The position numbers and the translations under genes are program-made. Of a stretch of 19,117 nt of DNA, positions 1-19,117 are shown piece by piece (position 1 is the stretch's first letter; the number at the start of each line of letters is the position of its first letter). Below the pieces are notes generated by a model. It had not been told where the DNA came from. It saw only the letters and a list, made by a program, of their open reading frames with translations, and did no database searches. The stretch is from Octopus sinensis (lineage: Eukaryota), in NCBI RefSeq assembly GCF_006345805.1, contig NW_021824254.1, positions 1-19,117 on the forward strand. The letters run 5' to 3'.

Positions 1-695
1 TATTCATTTTTATACCGCAAGAGACAAAGTTTTGAAAGCTTCCTTTCTCTTTTTCTCAAGTTCGTCATCACTGTCATTTTCCAAAACCTCTTTTTCTGTA
101 TCATCACTGTTATGCCCCATAAGCTCTTTTCGATGTGTTTCACTAACTGAATTGCAATTCTTGATTCCCATAAACAGAAAGAAAGGTATCTGCCTTGTCG
201 TCGAGTGAATAGTGTAATTATAATCCTCGACAATATCTTTGATAATATTGACATAACGTCCAAAACAATTTTTTGATTCAATGGTGGAGGAAATCCAACC
301 TTTTACACTCTTATTAAATCTAAAATTAATTAATGCAGAAAACATCTTTCTATTTGTCCCTGTACCCAAGGGGCCCGTGGTCTTCCAACATCCTCAAAGA
401 CAATTGATCTGGCTATTCTCTTAAGCCGCATTCGCTGAAACTTGCTCTTGTTATCGAAGACACTCAAATCCTCTTCATTGGACTTGAATTCTTTGATAAT
501 TTCCAATTCTTCCCTAGAAAGTGCCACCTGACGCATTAAATCACGCTGCTTTAAAATTAAATTATTTTATCAGTTTTAATAAAAATTATACATAAATAAA
601 CGACTTTTTCCTTAAAATTATTTTTTTCTTATTTTTTTTGTAATATTTGCTACAAGGTAACCAAAATGGGCGGATTTCAGAATGGGACTGTGACA
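1..695 (-). mobile_element. Internally deleted rve/retroviral-type integrase element (Ginger/KRBA2-like DNA transposon remnant)
   Basis: Minus-strand translation gives GRPRAPWVQGQIER followed, after removing a 26-nt intron-like segment (320-345), by FNKSVKGW...IVEDYNYTIHSTTRQIPFFLFMG. This matches the C-terminal half of rve integrase cores (QG.VERFN...YN...HS....PF). A short N-terminal stretch (MRQVALS...) is joined directly to this motif, so the middle is deleted. A possible TGT terminus (TGTCACAGTCCC on minus) ends at 695, but this boundary is uncertain. Confidence 0.6.
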
Positions 696-1592
696 GAATA
701 TATTCACAGATTTCAACAGGATGGTATCTCTAAATTTTGGCAATCAAAAGATCTACAAATGAAATTTCCAAATTTATGGAAGGAAATGAGTAATGTACTA
801 TTGACATTCCCTACCGCTTATTTAGTTTGAAAGTGGATTTAGTTTTGTCAATCATAATACACAATGTGAAAGAAATAGACTGAAAGTGTGTTATAGAGGC
901 GATATACGCCTAAAGTTGAGCAGAATTAAACCCGACATTTATTTATTTATTAAACACCAAGACCACAGTTAAGACCGAACTAATTAGCGTGTGATCCCGA
1001 CGCACTTCGACGGAGATCCTCCGGAAGGTTCAATCCTATGCAAAGTGCATCGTCCTGCGACGACGATGTCCCAGGGGGTAGGAGAGCTATTGGCCTTTTT
1101 CGGTGAGCATTAGGTGCCCCCTCGGCGTTTCCAAATCCAGTCGAAATCTCCAAATGAATTGGTGGACCACGTAAACGCCTTTCTAAGGCCGGATAGGAAG
1201 GAGATCCCTTTTTGACATCCTGTGTCGTGCCAGATGTACTCGTCACCTCACGGGCAAAGGAACTTCGACGAGATTAACCCCGACTTCAAAGTAGCCTCTT
1301 CTGGATTCGAACCCACGACGGCTGAATTCCAGTATCCAGAGCATACTCTTCAGCCAAGAGGGCCGACATAGAATATTTAGCGAGTAAACATCAATATCAA
1401 GGGTCTCGCTAATAATTTTTAATAAAAATTCAATTTTTTACATTTGATTTATTATTTTATATTTTGATTTTTGAGTTATATACAAAAAACAACCAATTAA
1501 GGGACAATGCCCAAAAATTTTTAAATTGTATGTGGACAAGGGGGCGACAAAAATCTAGGGGGCGATGAACAAAAAAAGGTTGAGAATGCCTG
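696..1592 (+). mobile_element. hAT (Buster/Charlie, SCAND3/ZBED-like) transposon: transposase C-terminus and right TIR, interrupted by a SINE
   Basis: Translation with one frameshift gives FWQSKDLQMKFPNLWKEMSNVLLTFPTAYLVESGFS...RNRLKVCYRGDIRLKLSRIKPDI, which resumes after the SINE as EYLASKHQYQGSR*. This is the hATC dimerisation domain. The right end AAAAGGTTGAGAATGCCTG (reverse complement CAGGCATTCTCAACC) ends at 1592 and is followed by ctcTAatg, fitting the Buster NNNTANNN target consensus. Confidence 0.85.
939..1363 (-). mobile_element. Full-length tRNA-derived SINE (~425 bp)
   Basis: The minus-strand head GCCCTCTTGGCTGAAGAG...GGTTCGAATCC has an A box (1346-1356) and a B box (1303-1313). 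There is no TTTT Pol III terminator in the body. The 3' tail is (TAAA)n. A target-site duplication CCGACAT lies at 932-938 and 1363-1369 (1-2 nt ambiguity with the 5' G). Removing the element restores the hAT reading frame. Confidence 0.85.
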
Positions 1593-2390
1593 CTCTAATG
1601 TAACTACAAAATCTTTCTCCTGGGCTTTTGAGTCCTTTGAGGTATTTAAGACGAGGACGTCGTCAGCGTATATGAGGAGGTTTTTCCAGGAGTTGGAGGT
1701 GAAAGGAAACTGCTCATTACAATTGTAAATAGAATTGGGTTGAGACAAGACCTCTGTGCCTCACCCCTTTAAAGCTAGACGTTTATCGAGTAAAGGCCTG
1801 ATTCAGACATGAAAAAGAACGGTTTGAAAGAAAACAACTCAGCCAGAGAAGGCCTTTTCTGTTGGCTCACACTCTTAAACTCTCTCTAACAGGTTTGATG
1901 CCACACGCTGTCAAAAGCCTTTGAGATATCTAGGCATATGAGAGGTAGAGTTTCTTTAAACTTCATTGCTCTCGCAACATAGACTGAAACGTCAGGAAGC
2001 ATTCACTGCAGCTCCGTCCAGCATGAAAACCCCATTGCTTTAGAAGCAGCACATTTTTGATTTTGGAAAGAAGTCAAAGCGCTTGGCCATAGTTTTTTCA
2101 ATCAACCTTGAGATAATTGATAATTGGGATTAGATTTATAGGACGGAAGCTGCTAGGCAGGCTTCTTGACCAATCGGATCTTGGAAATTTTCCAAGATAT
2201 TGGCACGTGACTTTATCGCAAATATCACGATCGGGTGGTGCCCTGATAACAATAGACAGGACAGTAGTTCTGACTCGCAACTTTGCGAGGTATCTAGACA
2301 GGCCTTCTATGTTTTGGCCAAGTAATTTGCGAATATGTTTGAGAATCCCTCCGGCGAAGCAGGCATGCAGGATTGGTTGCACATTTTAAT
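1593..2390 (-). mobile_element. Degenerate non-LTR (LINE) reverse transcriptase fragment, copy 1
   Basis: With frameshifts and stops the minus strand reads SFRPINLIPI, QWGFHAGRSC, LDISKAFDSVWH, NPILF and LLIYADDVLV, the ordered RT motifs. It is cut at 1593 by the hAT right end. Confidence 0.85.
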
Positions 2391-3083
2391 TTTTCGATGG
2401 GTTTATATATGTGACTGCTTACTTTTCGGCAACTTTGAATTTTTTGTTAATAGTTATCTGACTAGGGTTTAACGTTTTTACATCTCGCAAGTTTTGAATT
2501 CGTGCATTTTGTCTTTAGTTTATGTAAAAAAGTACAGATACAATAAGAGCTAATTTATTCCGAAATAACTAAACAAGTCATTCAGAGACAAATCTATTAT
2601 GGATGAATCATTTCTGGACAAGAAACGTTTTGAATAAAGAAATTCTAAATATTGTCGAATTATGCTAACGTTCAATAAAGTGAATATTTAACTGTCTCTT
2701 TGACTATATCAAGTAAGGTTTCAGATAAGAAATTTATAATCATACCTTTTAATAATTGTTATCTAAGTGTATGATTACTAAGATTAAAAATTCTGAATTG
2801 ATCGAAATTTGATTAATAAATTGTTATCTCTTTTTTGATTTTAGCAACTTTAACTATTTAATGATTTTTGGGCCCTAGTAGCAATTTGAAACAACTTCCA
2901 TTTTCACGGCCTTCGTTACCTTCATAAAACTATTCTAAAAAATTAAAAAGTATTTTATCACATTTTAAAAAGTTTTATCTTTGATAATTTATCATTAGAC
3001 ACATAAATTTAACGGTACATTATTTTGGTATATGATATGAAACCCGATAAACACAGTACATTAATTTTTATAGTTGCACAATA

Positions 3084-4051
3084 ATGGAAAAATGTGTTAT
3101 TTGTGAAGATTATGTAAGGGGTCAATTTTACGGTGTGCCCTGCTGCACCGGATGCAAACTATTCTTCAGGTAATATGTAACAATAATTTTAAGAAGATCG
3201 ATTCTCAAAAAATCTGAATTTGTTTGCAAATTCAGCCAAAACTGTAAAATAAACTTTGCAACTAAAAGCAAATGCAAATTCTGCAGATTTAAGAAATGCA
3301 GTCTCGCTGGAATGGATGCTAATGGTGACCAAAAAAATATTTTTAAAGTTTTCAGCTATTCAAAATTCTCGTGACGAAATATTTCCGGAAATTTCAATTC
3401 CAGAAGAAATTGTCAGATTCGAACAAGATTTTTTTCAATTATTTATTATATATTAACAATTTTAGGTTTTTTTCAATTTTGAATGCTTTTCTTGTTTTCT
3501 GAAAGATATTTGCCAAAATCCGCCGAATCAAACTTTTTTATTGGATTTGACTAAAAACTGGATTGTGATTTTTCTTAGAAACGAAAATGTATCATTTTGT
3601 GAAAATGTATTTGGTTAGTATATCTAATCAAATAGATTATTGCAAAATTAGCTGAGAATTATTTTTATTTATTCATTAGTATTTGCTGTTTTCCACAAAT
3701 GATATCAAAGTTAAACGAGATCCACAACATTGACCACGTCTCAAAACAATTTTTTTTAAGAACTGTCGAGAACTTTTCTAAGCTTCTAAAAGACTTTGGA
3801 ATTTAAAAATGAAATCAACAGATTTTTTTACATCAAGATAATTTCATTTCTTAAATTTTGTAGCTGTATTGATTTATGCTTAAGGTTATGTCGATCAAAA
3901 AGATTGTCCTCAATTGTTGAATAAATATTTGTATCTATTTGAAACAAACTGTCATTCACAGAACTTGAATGTATCGCAGTTTATAATCTTTTTACCGGAT
4001 TACCAAAAAACTGCTATTTGCTTTCAAGACCTCTTAGAATCGCAAAGTTGA
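3084..4051 (+). pseudogene. Nuclear hormone receptor (HNF4/NR2-like DBD), copy 1; intact DBD, ligand-binding domain disrupted
   Basis: ATG at 3084. C-x2-C-x13-C-x2-C and C-x5-C-x9-C-x2-C zinc fingers (CVICEDYVRGQFYGVPCCTGCKLFFRRS...CKFSQNCKINFATKSKCKFCRFKKC) and the T-box AGMDANAIQNSRDEI appear after removing GT-AG introns 3170-3193 (24 nt) and 3325-3355 (31 nt). The downstream LBD-like sequence (RLWNLKMKSTDFFYIKIISF, FIIFLPDY) contains in-frame stops and indels. Confidence 0.8.
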
Positions 4052-4352
4052 ATTACTTTTAACGATTTTTTTGATAAATAATGACGTTTATTTATTATAT
4101 ATTCTAGGGATTTATTTTTTTAATCAAATTTCATTTCAATATTAGTCGAATGCGTATTCTCAACATATTTCATATTCTTAAAACCAAACTTTTCAAATTT
4201 TTAATATAAATCTAGAATTTTGGATAACGTCCGAATCGTCATTTTCCAATGTTATGAACTCCCAGATTTTTAAAGACATTTTTTAAACTTTTCCCCCCAA
4301 TTTGCTTTTCACTGCGTTTGACTTTGCGAAAAACAAAGGAACAAAATGTCTA

Positions 4353-4827
4353 CACCTTTTTGGTATCGAATATCCGAACCATGATGTCAAATATCCGAAC
4401 TGAGATGTCAAACGTGTAGTTTCGTCCATATAAATTATATTTTTCTCATTAATAAATTAAATTTCAGTTTCATTACGTAGTCTCGCACAAATTTCGCTTA
4501 AAGTGATGACAGGATTTTCCTCAGCATAGTTTATCATTCTCGATATTTCAATGTCTGGGATTTTTGACCATTTGACCATTTTTTATTAGGTTGTGAAGCA
4601 TTTCGTATCCATTTATAAGCTGTATTTCGCTTAACTCCATTCAATTCCGCCACAATATGCCAATCTGCATCTTCATTTTCATATACAATTCTCATTTTGG
4701 CTTCCAAATTTGTTTTATTATATGTTTTACTAACACGAGAAGAAGTATTCATAGTTTTAACAAAAGTATTCATTTCGAACGAACAAAAATTCATTTATAT
4801 TTTTTAGATACGTAATTTTGACATTAA
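4353..4827 (-). mobile_element. IS630/Tc1/mariner-type non-autonomous element, truncated copy (one TIR missing)
   Basis: Same sequence as 10194-10668, starting TA|CACCTTTTTGGTATC. It stops at the D1 breakpoint before the second TIR. Confidence 0.8.
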
Positions 4828-4976
4828 GGTTGGGGTTAGGGATAAGGTTGGGGTTAGGGATAAGGTTGGGGTTAGGGATAAGGTTGGGGTTAGGGATAGG
4901 AATAAGGATAGGGTTAGAGATAAGGTTAGGGTTAGGGATAATGTTGGGGTTAGGGATAAGGTCGAAGTTAGGTTAG
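4825..4976 (+). repeat. G-rich 18-bp minisatellite (TAAGGTTGGGGTTAGGGA)n built from telomere-like hexamers
   Basis: Four perfect units at 4825-4896, a variant block, two near-perfect units at 4921-4956, then decay. Each unit contains TTAGGG plus the variants ATAAGG and TTGGGG. Confidence 0.92.
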
Positions 4977-5243
4977 TTTTTGGGATAAAATTGAGATTTT
5001 ATCACGCGCCAAAGATAAAAATGTATTTTTATCACGGATTAATACTTTTTGTGTTTTTTTATTTAGTTTTTATTTAAAAAAAATATAAATAGTTTTAATT
5101 TTTTTTGACTGGTAATCCAAATATTAATTAAATATTTAAAGTTCAACGGCGTTAATAACGAATGTTGGAGTATGTTGGTTTTGTACAAAAAAGAAATTTC
5201 AGTAAATTGGAATCTATCAGCATTTTAGGGTTAAACTTTAACT

Positions 5244-6819
5244 ATTTGCCCTGATCTTCTCCCAATTGTATCCTTGGCCTATTCCTTGCCGAGCAGCTTA
5301 CTTTTTTCCGGAAAAGTTATCAACTCTGAGTGTGGAATCCAACAGGGCGACCCCCTCGGTCCTCTACTATTCGCTGTCTGTGTTGATCACGTTGCACGTG
5401 GCATTTCTTCGCCTATCAATTTTTGGTATTTGGATGACGTCACTCTTGGTGGGCCTTTAGAAGTCATTATGGACGACGCCTCGAAGATAATATCTGAATT
5501 TTGAAGATTGGCCTTTCTCTAAATGGTGCAAAATGTGAACTAATCGGACTTACGGAGCCGCTAACCCAACAGAGTGAGGTTTTTATGGCCCTTTCGGAGA
5601 AAATTGACGGCCTTCGTATAACCGCTCTCGCGGATCTTGTGATTCTGGGTTCACCGATTTCTGATAAGGGAATTGCGAAGGCTATCGTTTCACAACGAGA
5701 TAAGATTGCTCCTCTCTGCGACCGATTACGACTGTTTGGCTCCCATCTGGGGCTGTTTTTGCTGAAAAACTTTCTTTTTATCCCCCGTTTAACCTTTTTG
5801 CTCCGAACGTCTCCTTGTTTTCGCTCACGTCAAGAACTTTTGGATTTGGATGACGCGGTTACATCATCATTACAGTTACTACTGAACACTTTGTTCACTG
5901 ACGTGGGACGTACACGTGCCGCACTTCCACTCCGCTTGGTGGCCTTGGGGTTCGTTCTTGTGCAGATCTTGCTTTGCCTTGTTATCTCTCGTCGATGTCT
6001 GCTTCCGGCAATTTCGTTCGCTCTGTTCTTATCAACTCACTCGAACTTGATGAGCTTACGGAATACCCTGTTGCTGTTCTCGCCTGGAGATCGCTCGGAC
6101 TTGGCCTTCCGGAGATTCCTTCAATACAGAAGAGTTGGGATGTCATCTGGTGCACACACCTGTTGGAGAGTCTTCGCACGCGAGTCGACCAGTTGGAACT
6201 GGCTTCATTGAACTGTGCCTGTCAGCCTCACTCAGGAGACTGGCTAAACGCACTTCCGTTGGCGTCCAATGGTCTGCTTATGGAAGACGAAACTATACGT
6301 ATCGGAGTGTGTCTTCGACTTGGACTTGAAATCTGCCAACCTCACCGTTGTCGCTGTGGTTTTTTGATTCCTTCGAACGGTTTACACGCATTGTCCTGTA
6401 GGAGGAGTGCTGGCCGATTTCCCCGCCACGTCCTTCTCAATGAAGTGGTGAAAAGGGCTTTGGATTCTGCGGGATTCCCATCGACCCTTGAACCTATTGG
6501 GCTCTGCCGCAGTGACGGAAAGCGTCCTGACGGGATGACTATATTCCCCTTTAGAGGAGGAAGGTCTCTTGTTTGGGATGTAACTTGCGTCGACTCCTTT
6601 TCAGATACTGTGCTCACAGGAACAGCCAGTACACAGGCTACGCATGTGCGCTGGCAGAAGAAAGGAAGTTGACGAAGTACGCTGTGCTTCCGAACGTCGT
6701 TGAGTTTGTCCCCCTAGCCTTTGAGACCTCCGGTGTGGTTGGAAAGAAGGTAGAAAATCTGTTACGGGTTGTGGGAGGAAGAATCTCACAGAATACAAAT
6801 GACCGGAGGGTTTTGATTA
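5244..6819 (+). mobile_element. CRE-clade (restriction-like endonuclease) non-LTR retrotransposon fragment, truncated at both ends
   Basis: RT motifs GIQQGDPLGPLLF and FWYLDDVTLGG, then LPLRLGGLGVR, a CCHC knuckle (CRCG...HALSC), the RLE motif RPDGMT...LVWDVTC and FVPLAFETSGVVG. Three 1-nt frameshifts (~5500, ~5937, ~6640) and no other stops. The expected final QRIS(I/V)A..R.N segment and the 3' tail are absent. Confidence 0.9.
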
Positions 6820-7194
6820 CGTGTGATCCCGACGCACTTCGACGGAGATCCTCCGGAAGGTTCAATCCTATGCAAAGTGCATCGTCCTGCGACGACGATG
6901 TCCCAGGGGTAGGAGAGCTATTGGTCCTTTTTCGGTGAGCATTAGGTGCCCCCTCGGCGTTTCCAAATCCAGTCGAAATCTCCAAATGAATTTGGTGGAC
7001 CACGTAACGCCTTTCTGAGGCCGGATAGGAAGGAGATCCCTTTTTGACATCCTGTGTCGTGCCAGATGTACTCGTCACCTCACGGGCAAAGGAACTTCGA
7101 CGAGATTACCCCGACTTCAAAGTAGCCTCTTCTGGATTCGAACCCACGACGGCTGAATTCCAGTATCCAGAGCATACTCTTCAGCCAAGAGGGC
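6820..7194 (-). mobile_element. tRNA-derived SINE, copy lacking the 3' ~50 bp and tail
   Basis: Matches 988-1363, with A and B boxes present and the tail replaced by the CRE junction. Confidence 0.85.
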
Positions 7195-7424
7195 CGACAT
7201 AGATATTTAGCGAGTAAACATCAATATCAAGGGTCTCGCTAATAATTTTTAATAAAAATTCAATTTTTTACATTTGATTTATTATTTTATATTTTGATTT
7301 TTGAGTTATATACAAAAAACAACCAATTAAGGGACAATGCCCAAAAATTTTTAAATTGTATGTGGACAAGGGGGCGACAAAATATCTAAGGGGGCGATGA
7401 ACAAAAAAAGGTTGAGAATGCCTG
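7195..7424 (+). mobile_element. hAT/Buster right end, duplicated copy
   Basis: Matches 1364-1592, including the TIR ...GGTTGAGAATGCCTG and the ctctaatg flank. Confidence 0.8.
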
Positions 7425-8223
7425 CTCTAATGTAACTACAAAATCTTTTCTCCTGGGCTTTTGAGTCCTTTGAGGTATTTAAGACGAGGACGTCGTCAGC
7501 GTATATGAGGAGGTTTTTCCAGGAGTTGGAGGTGAAAGGAAACTGCTCATTACAATTGTAAATAGAATTGGGTTGAGACAAGACCTCTGTGCCTCACCCC
7601 TTTAAAGCTAGACGTTTATCGAGTAAAGGCCTGATTCAGACATGAAAAAGAACGGTTTGAAAGAAAACAACTCAGCCAGAGAAGGCCTTTTCTGTTGGCT
7701 CACACTCTTAAACTCTCTCTAACAGGTTTGATGCCACACGCTGTCAAAAGCCTTTGAGATATCTAGGCATATGAGAGGTAGAGTTTCTTTAAACTTCATT
7801 GCTCTCGCAACATAGACTGAAACGTCAGGAAGCATTCACTGCAGCTCCGTCCAGCATGAAAACCCCATTGCTTTAGAAGCAGCACATTTTTGATTTTGGA
7901 AAGGAAGTCAAAGCGCTTGGCCATAGTTTTTTCAATCAACCTTGAGATAATTGATAATTGGGATTAGATTTATAGGACGGAAGCTGCTAGGCAGGCTTCT
8001 TGACCAATCGGATCTTGGAAATTTTCCAAGATATTGGCACGTGACTTTATCGCAAATATCACGATCGGGTGGTGCCCTGATAACAATAGACAGGACAGTA
8101 GTTCTGACTCGCAACTTTGCGAGGTATCTAGACAGGCCTTCTATGTTTTGGCCAAGTAATTTGCGAATATGTTTGAGAATCCCTCCGGCGAAGCAGGCAT
8201 GCAGGATTGGTTGCACATTTTAA
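7425..8223 (-). mobile_element. Degenerate LINE RT fragment, copy 2
   Basis: Duplicate of 1593-2390 with the same RT motifs. Confidence 0.85.
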
Positions 8224-8920
8224 TTTTTTCGATGGGTTTATATATTTGACTGCTTACTTTTCGGCAACTTTGAATTTTTTGTTAATAGTTATCTGACTAG
8301 GGTTTAACGTTTTTACATCTCGCAAGTTTTGAATTCGTGCATTTTGTCTTTAGTTTATGTAAAAAAGTACAGATACAATAAGAGCTAATTTATTCCGAAA
8401 TAACTAAACAAGTCATTCAGAGACAAATCTATTATGGATGAATCATTTCTGGACAAGAAACGTTTTGAATAAAGAAATTCTAAATATTGTCGAATTATGC
8501 TAACGTTCAATAAAGTGAATATTTAACTGTCTCTTTGACTATATCAAGTAAGGTTTCAGATAAGAAATTTATAATCATACCTTTTAATAATTGTTATCTA
8601 AGTGTATGATTACTAAGATTAAAAATTCTGAATTGATCGAAATTTGATTAAATAAATTGTTATCTCTTTTTTGATTTTAGCAACTTTAACTATTTAATGA
8701 TTTTTGGGCCCTAGTAGCAATTTGAAACAACTTCCATTTTTCACGGCCTTCGTTACCTTCATAAAACTATTCTAAAAAATTAAAAAGTATTTTATCACAT
8801 TTTAAAAAGTTTTATCTTTGATAATTTATCATTAGACACATAAATTTAACGGTACATTATTTTGGTATATGATATGAAACCCGATAAACACAGTACATTA
8901 ATTTTTATAGTTGCACAATA

Positions 8921-9891
8921 ATGGAAAAATGTGTTATTTGTGAAGATTATGTAAGGGGTCAATTTTACGGTGTGCCCTGCTGCACCGGATGCAAACTATT
9001 CTTCAGGCAATATGTAACAATAATTTTAAGAAGATCGATTCTCAAAAAATCTGAATTTGTTTGCAAATTCAGCCAAAACTGTAAAATAAACTTTGCAACT
9101 AAAAGCAAATGCAAATTCTGCAGATTTAAGAAATGCAGTCTCGCTGGAATGGATGCTAATGGTGACCAAAAAATATTTTAAAAGTTTTCAGCTATTCAAA
9201 ATTCTCGTGACGAAATATTTCCGGAAATTTCAATTCCAGAAGAAATTGTCAGATTCGAACAAGATTTTTTTCAATTATTTATTATATATTAACAATTTTA
9301 GGTTTTTTTCAATTTTGAATGCTTTTCTTGTTTTCTGAAAGATATTTGCCAAAATCCGCCGAATCAAACTTTTTTATTGGATTTGACTAAAAACTGGATT
9401 GTGATTTTTCTTAGAAACGAAAATGTATCATTTTGTGAAAATGTATTTGGTTAGTATATCTAATCAAATAGATTATTGCAAAATTAGCTGAGAATTATTT
9501 TTATTTATTCATTAGTATTTGCTGTTTTCCACAAATGATATCAAAGTTAAACGAGATCCACAACATTGACCACGTCTCAAACAATATTTTTTTAAGAACT
9601 GTCGAGAACTTTTCTAAGCTTTCTAAAAGACTTTGGAATTTAAAAATGAAATCAACAGATTTTTTTTACATCAAGATAATTTCATTTCTTAAATTTTGTA
9701 GCTGTATTGATTTATCTGCTTAAGGTTATGTCGATCAAAAAGATTGTCCTCAATTGTTGAATAAATATTTGTATCTATTTGAAACAAACTGTCATTCACA
9801 GAACTTGAATGTATCGCAGTTTATAATCTTTTTACCGGATTACCAAAAAACTGCTATTTGCTTTCAAGACCTCTTAGAATCGCAAAGTTGA
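8921..9891 (+). pseudogene. Nuclear hormone receptor, copy 2; intron 1 has a GC donor, LBD carries stops
   Basis: Same DBD as copy 1. Intron 1 (9007-9030) reads GC..AG and is open in frame. The LBD-like region has TGA at 9489-9491 and TAA at 9721-9723. Confidence 0.8.
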
Positions 9892-10193
9892 ATTACTTTT
9901 AACGATTATTTTTGATAAATAATGACGTTTATTTATTATATATTCTAGGGATTTATTTTTTTAATCAAATTTCATTTCAATATTAGTCGAATGCGTATTC
10001 TCAACATATTTCATATTCTTAAAACCAAACTTTTCAAATTTTTAATATAAATCTAGAATTTTGGATAACGTCCGAATCGTCATTTTCCAATGTTATGAAC
10101 TCCCAGATTTTTAAAGACATTTTTTAAACTTTTCCCCCCAATTTGCTTTTCACTGCGTTTGACTTTGCGAAAAACAAAGGAACAAAATGTCTA

Positions 10194-10753
10194 CACCTTT
10201 TTGGTATCGAATCCCGAACCATGATGTCAAATATCCGAACTGAGATGTCAAACGTGTAGTTTCGTCCATATAAATTATATTTTTCTCATTAATAAATTAA
10301 ATTTCAGTTTCATTACGTAGTCTCGCACAAATTTCGCTTAAAGTGATGACAGGATTTTCCTCAGCATAGTTTATCATTCTCGATATTTCAATGTCTGGGA
10401 TTTTTGACCATTTGACCATTTTTTTATTAGGTTGTGAAGCATTTCGTATCCATTTATAAGCTGTATTTCGCTTAACTCCATTCAATTCCGCCACAATATG
10501 CCAATCTGCATCTTCATTTTCATATACAATTCTCATTTTGGCTTCCAAATTTGTTTTATTATATGTTTTACTAACACGAGAAGAAGTATTCATAGTTTTA
10601 ACAAAAGTATTCATTTCGAACGAACAAAAATTCATTTATATTTTTTAGATACGTAATTTTGACATTAACATATTTGACATCTCAGTTCGGATATTAGAAA
10701 CCACAGTAATGACGTTTGACATCTCAGTTCGGATATTTGATACCAAAAAGGTT
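10194..10753 (-). mobile_element. Complete 560-bp IS630/Tc1/mariner-type deletion derivative (MITE-like) with N-terminal DNA-binding ORF
   Basis: TA flanks at 10192-10193 and 10754-10755. TIRs (C/A)ACCTTTTTGGTATC. Subterminal repeats TATCCGAACTGAGATGTCAAA at both ends. ORF 10297-10635 (DWHIVAELNGVKRNTAYKW...YAEENPVITLSEICARL) resembles the two HTH regions of ITm transposases, and no DDE domain is present. Confidence 0.85.
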
Positions 10754-10906
10754 TAGATTTTATTTTCCGATTTTATTTTCCATAAATCAGCTTCAAATTG
10801 TGTTTCGCGACAAAATAAACCGCAAAAACATCTAGCGTTTTATAAAAAAACCCATCTGGAATAAAACTGCAATTAGTAAAAGTAGTAAAATATAATATAT
10901 TAAAAA

Positions 10907-13900
10907 TCAATAAAGATCTTTCATTCCAGTAGAACAAAAAACAGCCCATGCATCGCTCAGTTCAATAAAAATGAGGGCAGCCAGTTCTTCAAACTGGGTA
11001 CCATTAACTTTGTCTGGGTGCACAATCAATGCAGCTCGTCTGTAATACCTTTTTACATCGTCTCCCAATAGAAGCTGTCCCATCGAAACTAGATTCCAAG
11101 GAGCACCTTCCCATAGAACTGTATGCAACGAACTTAATAAAAAACGAATGTTCTTTCCCTTTCCTTTGGACCATTGAGAGACCTAGCGAATATAATATAA
11201 TCTCATACAGTTTTTTCAGCACAACTAGCAGCCTCGTCACTACGTTCTTTGAGTTCACGCATCGTTTTTGGGGCGCCAGTAGACCCGTCAGTACTATAAA
11301 TATTCCCAAGATCTAAAATCCACAAAAAAGTCACCACTTGAAGGGATATCCCGTTCATTACCCTTCGGTATGTTTTCAGTAGGTATATCCTCCCTTTTAT
11401 TACGAATATCAGGACGTTGGGGAGACTTAGGATTAACGTTAGGAAGTTGTTCAGTTTTGGAATGGAAATATGGCATGTTCAAGTCAACAAAATGTGAATT
11501 TTTATCGTCACTTTCATCAAAATCTATTAGGAAGCTGGCATTGTTATTTTTGGACAGCTTAGGAGTTTGATGAGTCGAATCGGCTGAGAAAAAGTCGCTT
11601 AATAGGTCATTATCGGCCACTTTTTCTAGAAAATGATAGGACACAGAATAAACCTGATTGATGAGCAAAAGAAAGATCAAAAAGTACATCAGATGTGGGT
11701 TGGTTTTCGGATTGAATTGGTGTCTTCGTTGATGGTCTTTCAGGTGGAATGCCACTGATGAGATTCGATGCAAATTCGGATGGAATTGGTGTCTTCGTTG
11801 ATGGTCTCTCAGGTGGAATGCCACTGATGAGATTCGATGCAAATTCGGATATTTCTATAGTAATTTGACAGGAAATACTAAATCGTTGGGAAATGGTGAC
11901 AATTTCATTCATGGAAGTGGTAAGGGCAGCAGGGAAAAGAGAAGCTACTGACAAGTCCCCCCATCGTTCGTCGATAAAAGCAAGTCCTACATCGACAGGA
12001 GTCATATTGAAAATAATCTCACAGTCGTAATCACCTTTGTTAACATCGAACTTAGTCCTAAAAATAAGAAACCAAGACTGCCTGTTAAAATGATGGAATG
12101 TTTTGTCCCCATTGAGTTGGCAAGTGCTGAATGAAAGAGACAAAACAAGATTCATCTACGACAATAAAATACTTCCAAGCACATTTCGCTGAGATATTTC
12201 GAACAACTGAAGTGTTATATTTCCTCGGATTGATATACGAGGACAAAAATCCTGAAGAGGAACATATGAATCATTCCCAGGGACGGCTTGTCTGTCATTA
12301 ACAAACAGTCGGCCATAGAACCCTTCTCTACAAATAGGCGATAGTAGCACCTTGCATTCTTAACTATAACCTGGGAAAGATGCCAGTCAGAGTAGACACT
12401 TAGAACTGGAGCATCCCGAATTATCATTTGAGTGTAATTTAATAGTCTGACGTAATTAAACAATGATACGCAGTTTCCAATGCATTCATAGAAACCAATC
12501 CCTTCTTGTGGGATACATATTTGTCCGACACTTCCACACTGTCGAATAGACGACCAAACAGCAATAGACCACACAAGAAAAAATGAGCAGAAGAGTCGTC
12601 AATCTACAATTAACAAAAAATATGACTTTTGCACACACAACACATATGGCAGTTGGGGAAGATGCCATACGTTTGTAGACATACGAAAGAACGTTGAGAG
12701 TGCTGTGAAGTGACTCCCCAGTACGTCGATACCAGACGACCTCGGCCAACTACAAATAATTGAACCCTCCGACATTTGTCAATTTATGTGCTGTTTTGGG
12801 AAAAACCACAAATATGACATCCCCGTTTTTCTTAAGCTGTCTTACAATCTCTTCACTCTGATGCAACGCCTGCTTATTCATTTCACGGGGCGATAGTGCT
12901 ATCTTGGGTTAAAAACGGAATACAAATCAGTCTCGAGGTAATAAATTTCTTTTCTAATGAGTGTTGATCTGCAAAATAATTCTCAACAACGGGTCTCTCT
13001 AATGGAGGAGAGGCACAAGTGAGAAAAGAGGGGGGTCTTGTGAGGTCGATCTTTAATTGGTTAAAGTGGGACCAGATCTGTTGAATAGAAAACCGACGTT
13101 GTGGGTCAGGCACAAGAATGCATTCTAAGTTGAGAAAAACAAGTACCAATAAGTCTTGAAAACGGAGATGCATGAGGAAAATTATACGAGGCCTGAACAA
13201 TGGCAAGTATAGACTGGTCTGCAAAGGGATGTTGACCAAAGCAGAGGCAGTAGAGAATACAACCGACCGCCTGGATACAAAGATATGAATACAAACCCAA
13301 ATGTCCTGTTCGACTCCAAGAGTGTGCCTCATGTAAAGATCTACCATTTCAGGTGCCCGATATGCCTGAGTGGTACAATTTTTGATCTGCGGGTAATGAT
13401 TGGCATGTACCTCTTCCTCAAGACGCGTGATCTGGTCGACTGACCAATCACTGACAACATATATTTCGTTCGTCGCACTCCCAAAATCACACAATTTAAT
13501 TTCCCCATCAGCAGAGATTAGAAAGTTCTCCATCTGCACATGTCATAAAACGATACCTTCAAATCTCTGTGAATGACGGGGGGAGATGCTGAATGGAGTG
13601 CGTCTACTGCACGGAGAACACGAACAAAAATATATCCAATCTCTTCGAGAGTGAGATTTGCATGGGCATTGAGAGCAGCCAAGAGCGTGCCCCCTAAAAT
13701 AAGCGAGCGACGAATTGATACCCGTGCATAATTCAGTGACGATAAATGCATGTGTCAAACCACTATTAACCTTCATCTGAGTAGAACCAATAAAGCGCAC
13801 AATATTACGGGACGATTGGAATTTGCTCTAAAAATATCAAGTAAGTGAAAGATACAGAAAAGTATATTTCCTTCTCTACGGATAATCTGTTAGAGTCGGT

Positions 13901-14677: not shown

Positions 14678-14763
14678 TCTGTAAGCACGGGATTGTTTGT
14701 GGTCTAACTCCTTTAAACAGTTTTTTGTACACCTTATTTAGCAGAATCCTCATTGTACGGGTG
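14678..14763 (-). repeat. 86-bp inverted copy of the LINE RT segment at 15625-15710
   Basis: The reverse complement matches 15625-15710 with 6 mismatches in 86 nt. Confidence 0.9.
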
Positions 14764-14806: not shown

Positions 14807-15490
14807 TTAAGGTAGTTTAGGTCTAAAACTACTAATGATCGAGAAGACTTTGCTCCTCAGGATCGCAATGGAGATTCTTTGAAACAGCCATTACTTCTCC
14901 CGACGAGATCCAGAGATTTGTGCGGTCATTGCTCCGGACGTTTCAGAAGAGATCGGGGAAAAGATCAAGTTTTCCGTCATGTTAGAGTATTTCTAAATTT
15001 TGAGTTCTCCAGGCTTTATAGCGGCTGACTTGTTATAATATGTTTGTAAGATCTCTCAACAAACTTTGAATGAATAAATGATATATTTAATTTGCTGGTC
15101 AGAGAAATGCCATTAATCTTCTTAAAGAAACTGTTATTTTTAGACTACTAACGTGCAACTGCGTTAATAAGATATAACAGAGTAAAACGACACTGGTAGC
15201 AGCGAACTATTGGCCAATAGCCTCATGTGTGCTTTCTCTAAAACAGGGGTTGGCAGAATTTGCCTTCGTGGGCCAAAATTTTATTTTTGTATGCGATCCC
15301 GGCCAAAAAAGAAAAAATCCTTATCGGACGCAGAAATAAGGATATACAAAAATCCTCTTGACTGAAACAGAGGATCTCGTTTCGTTTGCAATCGTGAGCA
15401 GTAACGCACAAACTATCTGTTTTGCCGAGAACTGACTGTTCCAGGGAAACGCTTGCAGATTTATTAGTTAAAAATGATTTCAAGGAATTG
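14807..15490 (-). mobile_element. Highly degenerate 3' part of a third CRE-like element
   Basis: Minus strand reads KSAAIKPGELKI*KYSNMTENLIFSPISSETSGAM...REK*WLFQRISIAILRSKVFSIISSF...*. Upstream, EDFCISLFLR and HEGKFC...RKH are weaker matches to the pre-knuckle and knuckle region. The 5' boundary is approximate. Confidence 0.65.
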
Positions 15491-15539: not shown

Positions 15540-16080
15540 TTACTTTTAGTAATTTTGTTCGAGAACAATGGAAAAGATTGTCTTTAACAGACTTTCTGAT
15601 TATGTGGAATCATAAATTTGCTTTCACCCGTACAATGAGGATTCTGCTAAAGAAGGTGTACAGGAAACTGTTTAAAGGAGTTAGAGCATCAACAATCCCG
15701 TGCTTACAGAAACAATGACTGGGTAACTGTGGTGTGCCCGGACCTCGCAAAAGCTTTCGATACCTGGACCTACTTGGAAGAGTTATCAGAGTTTGTAGAA
15801 TTTAGAAGGGTCAATTTTTTCAATCTCCTTCTGGCGGACATTCCTCTACAGCTTGTATGTACTGGAAAACTCATCATATATGCTGATGACATCTTTATCA
15901 TGGATACCTCCAAAAAATTTTACAGTTTTGAAGACGACATACATTGCCATGTTAAAGAAGTTGACAGTAAAGAAGGGCTTGATCCTAGCACCTGAGAAGA
16001 CACCATGTCCTGGTTCGGGACGGAGAAGAGTGACTATTTTATCGAACAGTTGGAAAGCACAAGACATTTTGCATTGAAAC
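15540..16080 (+). mobile_element. Degenerate LINE RT fragment
   Basis: With frameshifts it reads SRTMEKIVFNRLSDY, SPVQ*GFC, VVCPDLAKAFDT, FFNLLLADIP, LIIYADDIFI and GLILAPEKT. The QGS motif region is deleted. Confidence 0.8.
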
Positions 16081-17940: not shown

Positions 17941-19117
17941 TCAGACCTCAACTGTACACTTGACAAGAAATGAGGCAAATTCGAGATTGTCCCAATAGCA
18001 CAAATGAGAAGTGAAAAACCGAGAAAACCCAAAGCTACCTTCATAGAGTGCAAAATCGAGTCTATGCTCCAGTCCTCTCAATAAGGCACTGAAAGTACCT
18101 TCCGGTAGAGGATTGAACTCCTCTCCATCGACCGAGTCAGAAAACACTTGGGTGAACCCAGCAATGGCCGAGAGCAAAGACCACCGTCGATACCATGGAG
18201 TTGAGTCGTCCTGAATCACCGATTCAAACGAATATCGGGGAAAGCGACGGAATTCCGGTCTACTGGACATAGTCGACAAATTGACGGGTTCCACATTGCG
18301 GAACTCCCGGCAGAACATTGGCTCGAGTCGATAGGCCTGGACTGAAAGGGGAAGAGAACCATAAAGTCGCTGGGGAAAAATATGTTAAAGAGACGGAAAG
18401 AACGGTTGCCACAGTGAGGAAATATGTCCTCCACTGTGGATTTGTCACGAATCGAAAAGCCTCTGAGCATAAGGAACACAGCAAGAGGGGATCCAATCAT
18501 GAAGAGGTTACTGAAGTGGATGTCGAGGGAATGAGACAAAACCAGGCTACGATCTCCACACGTGCTCTGATTAGTAATAAGATCATAGACAATGACAGAT
18601 CCTGGAATGAGAAGAGTGGACAAACCAAGTGAGTGTGCCACAATGGAGACTTGAGAGACTTCCCTGTGGTAGTCCAAAAAAAGAGAGTGCAGTCTTTTGA
18701 GTTCGTCGGCCAGTTTGGAAATAATCTAGGATAGGAAAGAGAGATAACCTTATGTCTGAAATGTGCACTACTGTAGTACAGCACATCAAGAAGGGAGTTG
18801 TTGATGAAGTTCCTAATTCGAATGTTAGCATTAGGCATGATCGCATCAAGTGTCTCTGCAAATGACAGCCCAAACACAACTTTCTCCCAACTCAACCGAC
18901 CGCCAGTTGATAGGAATAAACTCAATGTTGCCCTCCTTGTGTTCGGAGTGCAAATACTCCTTTATGTTCTTCCGCAGTCTCCAATACTACAACCACACAA
19001 CCTGAGACAACACTGTGTCGAATTGGCATGATCCAATGACTGAGCAATCCCCGGGACGATGAAAACAAGGTGAGATACGTTCTTCTGTGTGGCGTCCGTA
19101 CGTGCCAATTTGTAGTA
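17941..19117 (-). CDS. DDHD-family intracellular phospholipase A1 (DDHD1/DDHD2/SEC23IP-like), 3' part; gene continues beyond the window
   Basis: With 23-25 nt introns the minus strand reads HLVFIVPGI, IEFIPINWR, LLDVLYYSS, lipase motif VAHSLGS, LFMIGSPLAVFL, NIFFPSDFMAYRLEP, RLDF and SHLCYW. Stop at 17941-17943. Confidence 0.88.

Follow-up and report, generated by a model that had tools for sequence, protein, structure and literature searches.

A candidate templated-insertion duplication with both breakpoints inside transposons in the Octopus sinensis genome assembly

The first 19,117 nucleotides of contig NW_021824254.1 of the octopus Octopus sinensis (RefSeq assembly GCF_006345805.1; this whole stretch is referred to below as the window) contain a host segment of about 3.84 kb, D, that is present twice in the same orientation around a composite filler, X, with host flanks A and B on either side. 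We propose, with a probability of about one in two, that this A-D-X-D-B order arose in one event, of replication or of repair, in which the template was switched (a cycle of templated insertions), and that it has no function. It is probably a very recent, neutral structural variant of an octopus chromosome, and nothing suggests that it does anything for its host. The layout itself, the joints and their microhomologies, the internal piece of a retroelement within X and the near-identity of the two copies of D are observed directly and are described before the proposed event is considered.

The two copies are head-to-tail direct repeats, both read on the plus strand, D1 at 988-4827 (3,840 nt) and D2 at 6820-10668 (3,849 nt), with a start-to-start spacing of 5,830-5,841 nt. 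The initial annotation had delimited them in the same way. The BLAST match between them reaches slightly further, to 983-4827 and 6816-10668, with 99.25% identity, and D1 possibly starts at 983 if a 4-nt ATTA microhomology is counted as part of it. There is no N anywhere in the window, so no N gap separates the copies. They differ in 28 alignment columns, five of which are substitutions (0.13%; at 1185, 2411, 3171, 3344 and 4373) and 23 one-base indels. Sixteen of the indels change the length of a run by one base, just eight of these in runs of four or more, and the remaining seven lie outside homopolymers; the initial description of most copy differences as homopolymer indels is therefore only roughly right.

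Each breakpoint of the duplication cuts a transposon that is left whole at the other copy, and because of this the ancestral order must have been A-D-B, as had been deduced from the same two half-transposons. The left-hand transposon is a short interspersed nuclear element (SINE) of 424 nt at 939-1362 on the minus strand. The label comes from its structure: a tRNA-like box B (GGTTCGAATCC) near the head, an (AATA)n tail at 939 and a 7-nt target-site duplication (TSD), CCGACAT, at 932-938 and 1363-1369. Scans with Rfam and with ARAGORN for tRNA made no call on the head of the element. The left breakpoint of D1, 987|988, sits 49 nt from the SINE tail. Only across the A/D1 edge is the SINE complete with its TSD, in agreement with the initial annotation; copy 2 is without the 49-nt tail, and X stands in its place.

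The right-hand transposon is a Tc1/mariner-like relic of about 630 nt, which is complete where D2 meets flank B, at 10160-10789 on the minus strand. It has long, imperfect inverted arms with repeated 21-nt units (10160-10257 and 10668-10789) and a helix-turn-helix (HTH) open reading frame (ORF) at 10297-10635. The right inverted arm has its first base at the D2/B boundary, 10668|10669, and D1 ends at 4827, at the inner edge of the same arm. The truncated relic in D1 (4319-4827, minus strand; coordinates derived from D2 through the offset of 5,840-5,841 nt) keeps the left arm, at about 4319-4417, and the interior with the HTH ORF, and its right arm is wholly gone. An inverted-terminal-repeat element with a TA TSD had been annotated as whole only across the right edge of copy 2. 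Both arms are indeed found only there; the TA duplication was not confirmed, as the sequences around the ends in the best alignment are GTT|TGAC and ATCA|GCT. Folded as single-stranded DNA, the arms pair with a minimum free energy of -72 kcal/mol (z = -6.06, DNA fold). One breakpoint of the duplication thus coincides exactly with a loop/stem boundary, which recalls the hairpin- or cruciform-forming inverted repeats known as fragile sites. The geometry is different in that the arms of 98 and 122 nt are separated by a spacer of 410 nt, a length at which extrusion in duplex DNA is unlikely, and the feature is present at just one of the two breakpoints.

The filler X occupies 4828-6819 (1,992 nt) and has four parts, all described here on the plus strand. 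X1 (4828-4975) is a telomere-like minisatellite, a degenerate TTAGGG-variant array with the 18-mer unit TAAGGTTGGGGTTAGGGA; it opens with four units that are perfect, at 4825, 4843, 4861 and 4879, after which the array decays. X2 (4976-5245) is an AT-rich stretch with 23% GC that grades out of the decaying end of X1, and for this reason the two parts were probably contiguous in their donor. X3 (5246-6810) is a 1,565-nt internal piece, in sense orientation, of a retrotransposon that has no long terminal repeats (non-LTR) and carries a restriction-like endonuclease (RLE). X4 (6811-6819) is a 9-nt sequence, TTTTGATTA. The composition reported initially, a telomere-variant array, an AT-rich stretch and a retroelement fragment cut at both ends, is accurate, with the 9 nt of X4 to be added.

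The joints have the features expected of joining or switching in vivo. At the D1/X joint, the first unit of X1 shares the last 3 nt of D1, a TAA overlap at 4825-4827. At the X/D2 joint, the last 4 nt of X4 (ATTA, 6816-6819) are identical to 983-986 of flank A, and X4 is accordingly read as 5 nt of untemplated filler followed by a 4-nt microhomology; no local template was found for the nine bases. An ORF that runs across the X/D2 joint had no relative among 5.8 billion proteins, and the joint 30-mers GTAATTTTGACATTAAGGTTGGGGTTAGGG and GGAGGGTTTTGATTACGTGTGATCCCGACG were absent from metagenome contigs; both results are uninformative.

X3 extends from the palm motifs of the reverse transcriptase (RT), which match RVT_1, through a CCHC motif to a PD-(D/E)XK restriction-like endonuclease, and its CRCG...HALSC and RPD...WDVT...EERK motifs align with full-length relatives. 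The combination of RT, CCHC motif and C-terminal PD-(D/E)XK endonuclease is common to all RLE clades, including CRE, R2, R4, NeSL and Hero. It identifies X3 as a piece of an RLE-type non-LTR element, and the narrower attribution to the CRE clade in the initial annotation is not established. A search of 1.8 billion protein representatives returned thousands of relatives of X3, one of them a 98%-identical protein, XP_029657562.1, from O. sinensis itself; a second copy is XP_029655455.1. The relatives carry an N-terminal PHD finger, and the PDB gave matches to PHD fingers only; a PDB sequence search with the endonuclease piece gave no match.

The loci of these two copies, L001 and L002, were taken from assembly GCA_006345805.1. 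Over 1,568 nt, X3 is 99.7% identical to L001 and 99.6% identical to L002. Relative to L001, in which a full-length ORF lies at 9407-12328, it differs by two substitutions and lacks a single base at each of three places (5499, 5936 and 6634), and these deletions are exactly the three frameshifts of the window. A possible TTG overlap is found between X2 and X3 at 5243-5246, where the window and L001 start to agree. Because the three copies of the element are 99.5-99.9% identical to one another, the family is young, and it is probably active. Only two near-identical annotated copies were found in the retroelement protein family, and neither is accompanied by X1-X2.

A defined 3' end, ...GACTGTAT, is common to L001 and L002, with A/T-rich sequence beyond it (in L002, an A-rich run). 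X3 begins at least 1.29 kb inside the element ORF and stops 133 nt short of this end; the loss comprises 28 codons and the stop codon together with about 47 nt of untranslated region. Since the normal 3' end is missing, ordinary retrotransposition is excluded as the source of X3, and the initial annotation was right that X did not arrive by normal target-primed reverse transcription. There is a superficial likeness to such an insertion, in that a sense retroelement lies within a direct duplication of its target with the 3' side of the element adjoining the downstream copy. It is outweighed by the differences: the element 3' end and the A/T-rich sequence downstream of it are absent, nine unrelated bases are present at the joint, 418 nt of foreign sequence stand on the 5' side, and the "TSD" would measure 3.84 kb, with no short duplication.

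Degenerate TTAGGG-variant arrays like that of X1 are also present in L001 (8031-8186, C-strand) and in L002 (20700-20849), which makes three in the roughly 67 kb of the window, L001 and L002 together. Interstitial arrays of this type seem to be common in the O. sinensis genome, and since both of the other octopus loci compared contain one, the array of X1 is not special. Telomerase healing of a break at 4827 was considered and rejected: the 18-nt period is made up of three hexamers (TTGGGG, TTAGGG and ATAAGG) and the array decays into AT-rich DNA, which identifies X1 as a copied minisatellite and not a telomerase product. A retroelement specific for telomere repeats was also rejected, as the normal copies have no such arrays at their 3' ends. 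Within X1 the perfect 18-mers are confined to 4825-4896, beside the D1 joint, and the degenerate units to 4897-4975. Slippage or re-copying at a switch fits this distribution; it could equally be the donor's own structure.

A single round of template switching could have produced the whole arrangement. A plus-strand 3' end, growing or broken, would have stopped at 4827, at the inner edge of the relic's right arm, where a fork could stall at a hairpin or a bound protein, or where cutting could occur. This end would have primed on a telomere-like minisatellite by means of the 3-nt TAA overlap and copied the array together with its AT-rich flank (418 nt). Synthesis would then have gone on, or switched at the TTG overlap, into the interior of a young RLE retrotransposon, of which 1,565 nt would have been copied. 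After the addition of about five untemplated bases, the strand would have reached the SINE that lies 3.84 kb upstream, on the homologue or the sister chromatid, and re-annealed within it by ATTA, and D would have been replicated again. The order of events, the use of DNA and not RNA as template and the trigger at the inverted repeat are all parts of this reconstruction that we infer. Template switching had been raised initially as an option, and it fits both the microhomologies at the joints and the filler.

In the cycle of templated insertions, strings of templates return to and re-replicate a host segment, an outcome attributed to replication-based template switching (PMC7025897). The likeness to this class, one of those defined in the pan-cancer genome study PCAWG (PMC7025897), and to the fork stalling and template switching/microhomology-mediated break-induced replication (FoSTeS/MMBIR) events of human copy-number variation is as follows: segments from elsewhere are strung together, the string re-enters upstream of its point of exit so that a host segment is re-replicated, and the joints show microhomology and short insertions. 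The differences are that the templates here are short (0.4 and 1.6 kb) and repetitive, and that the octopus structure is germline or constitutional, in an invertebrate assembly, whereas the templated-insertion cycles were somatic events in tumours.

Several observations weigh against template switching as the explanation. The D-X-D structure is known here from assembled sequence alone. The match between a breakpoint and the edge of an inverted repeat was noticed after the fact, and no secondary structure is present at the SINE breakpoint. Neither the window nor L001 or L002 contains a match to X2, and the donor of X1-X2 was not found; one or two ectopic templates may have been copied. One-base indels are typical of a noisy long-read consensus, and they account for 23 of the 28 differences between D1 and D2, at about 6 per kb as opposed to 0-2.4 per kb in other repeat pairs in L001 and L002. 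The predominance of indels implies that at least one copy of D is poorly supported or poorly polished. Finally, the O. sinensis assembly GCA_006345805.1 contains 5.2% duplicated BUSCOs compared with 0.4-0.5% in O. vulgaris and O. bimaculoides (PMC10700109).

The last points raise the possibility, which we consider smaller than that of a genuine duplication and yet far from negligible, that the structure is an assembly artefact. The individual would then carry A-D-B only, and D-X-D would have come from a handful of long reads that were chimeric or misplaced, or from the laying of two haplotypes in tandem; short-read polishing would have been unable to mend the copies, because reads would go to whichever copy was correct at each site. 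An indel rate several times that of other repeat pairs in the assembly of the same species would be accounted for; those other pairs, in L001 and L002, differ mainly by substitutions. The three frame-breaking one-base deletions of X3 relative to both of its sister copies, the tenfold excess of duplicated BUSCOs (PMC10700109) and a substitution difference of 0.13%, compatible with two alleles, would also be in keeping with an artefact. False duplications on one scaffold have been documented for long-read assemblies, typically with a gap or a gap in read depth between the copies (Ko et al. 2022, PMC9516828). The octopus copies resemble these cases (PMC9516828) in being near-identical and adjacent on one scaffold, in the dominance of error-type indels among their differences and in the surplus of duplicated BUSCOs in the assembly. 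They differ in having no gap between them and in being separated instead by a well-formed spacer with defined microhomology joints. That spacer is 2 kb of clean sequence, without an N and with a 99.7% match to a real element; X is meaningful sequence and not an error-ridden read. Two new joints with microhomology and filler, and an insert of several parts that measure 150-1,500 nt, would be unlike ligation chimeras of multi-kb fragments, and residual indels would be expected in any near-identical pair when short reads map to the copy that happens to be right at a given position. Two distinct molecules are also indicated by the five substitutions, among which is a nonsense change. A walk of the assembler through other copies of the SINE or the Tc1 element was rejected as a source of error, given that the overlaps would be just 380-500 nt long and that those parts differ by only 0.6-1.6%, mostly by indels. 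In total, we regard the structure as likely to be real. If it is an artefact, it would serve as a warning about gene-copy counts in this assembly, in which the duplicated zinc-finger ORF described below would be counted as a gene gain.

If the duplication is genuine, template switching still has to be set against other routes, and template switching, end joining, RNA-templated synthesis and integration of a circle lead to the same product and are inseparable on sequence grounds. In end joining, one chromatid would have broken at 4827 and its sister at 987, and the broken ends would have been ligated with captured filler; this filler may include cDNA made by the element's own template-jumping RT, a form of RNA-templated repair. 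The capture of 3'-truncated retroelements at breaks is known from endonuclease-independent insertion of long interspersed nuclear elements (LINEs) and from Ty1 cDNA, and the joint bears a short untemplated filler. X3 is in sense orientation with its 3' side adjoining D2, as would be the case had reverse transcription been primed by the minus strand of D2, and the element family is young and probably active, with three copies 99.5-99.9% identical and intact ORFs in L001. Against this, sister chromatids would have to break at the same time at points 3.84 kb from each other, either the array and the AT-rich stretch would have to be transcribed or a second fragment captured, and the sequence bears no mark of an RNA intermediate such as a poly(A) tail or splicing. 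We therefore think end joining unlikely. It is a slighter chance again that the whole filler was made by the RT of the RLE element, which would have started inside its own RNA, jumped to an AT-rich RNA and a telomere-variant RNA resembling telomeric repeat-containing RNA (TERRA), and so bridged a staggered break of 3.84 kb; if true, such filler would be a natural case of break repair mediated by a retroelement RT that created a multi-kb duplication. The route we find hardest to credit is the prior formation of a 5.83-kb D+X circle followed by a single homologous crossover into D, an option also raised initially. Its product would be formally identical to the layout, with a period of 5,832-5,841 nt equal to D plus X, but one event is enough, whereas this route requires two: a circle with the same complex joint must form, and it must afterwards integrate. 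The sequence also shows neither a recombination site nor any feature of a circle origin. Unequal crossing-over was rejected because the breakpoints share no homology and no X would result.

The only coding feature duplicated with D is a lone zinc-finger ORF of the nuclear-receptor (zf-C4) type, one copy of which contains a stop. In D2 it is intact, with 86 codons (8921-9181, plus strand; PF00105 on 8921-9178, E = 2e-16), and opens Met-Glu-Lys-Cys, so that the first zinc ligand is residue 4. In D1 (3084-3341, plus strand) it is interrupted at codon 30, where base 3171 is T and the corresponding base of D2 is C (TAA versus CAA). The duplication had been described initially as one of a host receptor gene. 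A zf-C4 DNA-binding domain is indeed encoded, but the description is overstated for a solitary 86-codon ORF with a stop in one copy; no ligand-binding domain (PF00104) was found in six-frame pieces of at least 40 residues across 6820-11000, which covers D2 and the next 330 nt. The zinc-finger ORF had no relative in the length range searched and no exact record, both of them uninformative results. A protein of the same RLE superfamily as X3, P0176, is encoded on a metagenome scaffold (L003, 519-3590) by an uninterrupted ORF of 1,023 codons that combines zf-C4, PHD, RT and endonuclease domains. Its zinc finger begins at the initiator Met, as does that of D, with 29% identity between the two. Given this shared position, the ORF in D may be transposon-derived and perhaps not from a host receptor.

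Flank B contains exons of host genes, a kinase exon (Pfam Pkinase) at 12883-13539 and a DDHD-domain exon at 18216-18677, both on the minus strand. From its motifs we take the kinase to resemble the AAK1/BMP2K/GAK group. The duplication lies a few hundred bases past the apparent 3' side of the kinase gene, and a 69-nt tandem repeat (11706-11850; 2.1 copies, 97% identity) falls within long minus-strand ORFs just downstream of the kinase exons. Further along, the C-terminal part of another RLE retroelement, at 14828-15061 on the minus strand (tblastn E = 2e-8 to 4e-9), survives as a fragment between the members of an 86-nt inverted repeat pair (14678-14763 and 15625-15710), which are 93% complementary and separated by 861 nt.

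L001 is itself a complex locus. It contains two full-length RLE retroelements from different families, at 4696-7572 (minus strand) and 9407-12328 (plus strand), which are arranged head to head with 73% nucleotide identity, and the degenerate telomere-like array at 8031-8186 lies between their 5' ends. The retroelement region is flanked by collinear direct repeats (1-4375 versus 14683-22633) with 92-98.7% identity and a spacing that rises from 14.7 to 18.3 kb. In these repeats substitutions exceed gaps (22 versus 5 in the best block), unlike D1 and D2; they represent an older duplication or else a long repeat that is present in two copies. Among the relatives of the X3 element, the 1,395-residue protein P0012 has an RT-endonuclease protein joined to a C-terminal ubiquitin hydrolase (UCH) domain (E = 2e-57), which reflects either a fusion in the gene model or the capture of a domain from the host.

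If the structure is real, it would be a clean, base-resolved templated-insertion duplication in the germline of a cephalopod; its passenger would be a retroelement fragment that is very young and can be dated, and one of its breakpoints would lie at a transposon inverted repeat. It would represent no new mechanism and has no evident phenotype; what it would illustrate is the seeding of structural variation by transposon relics.

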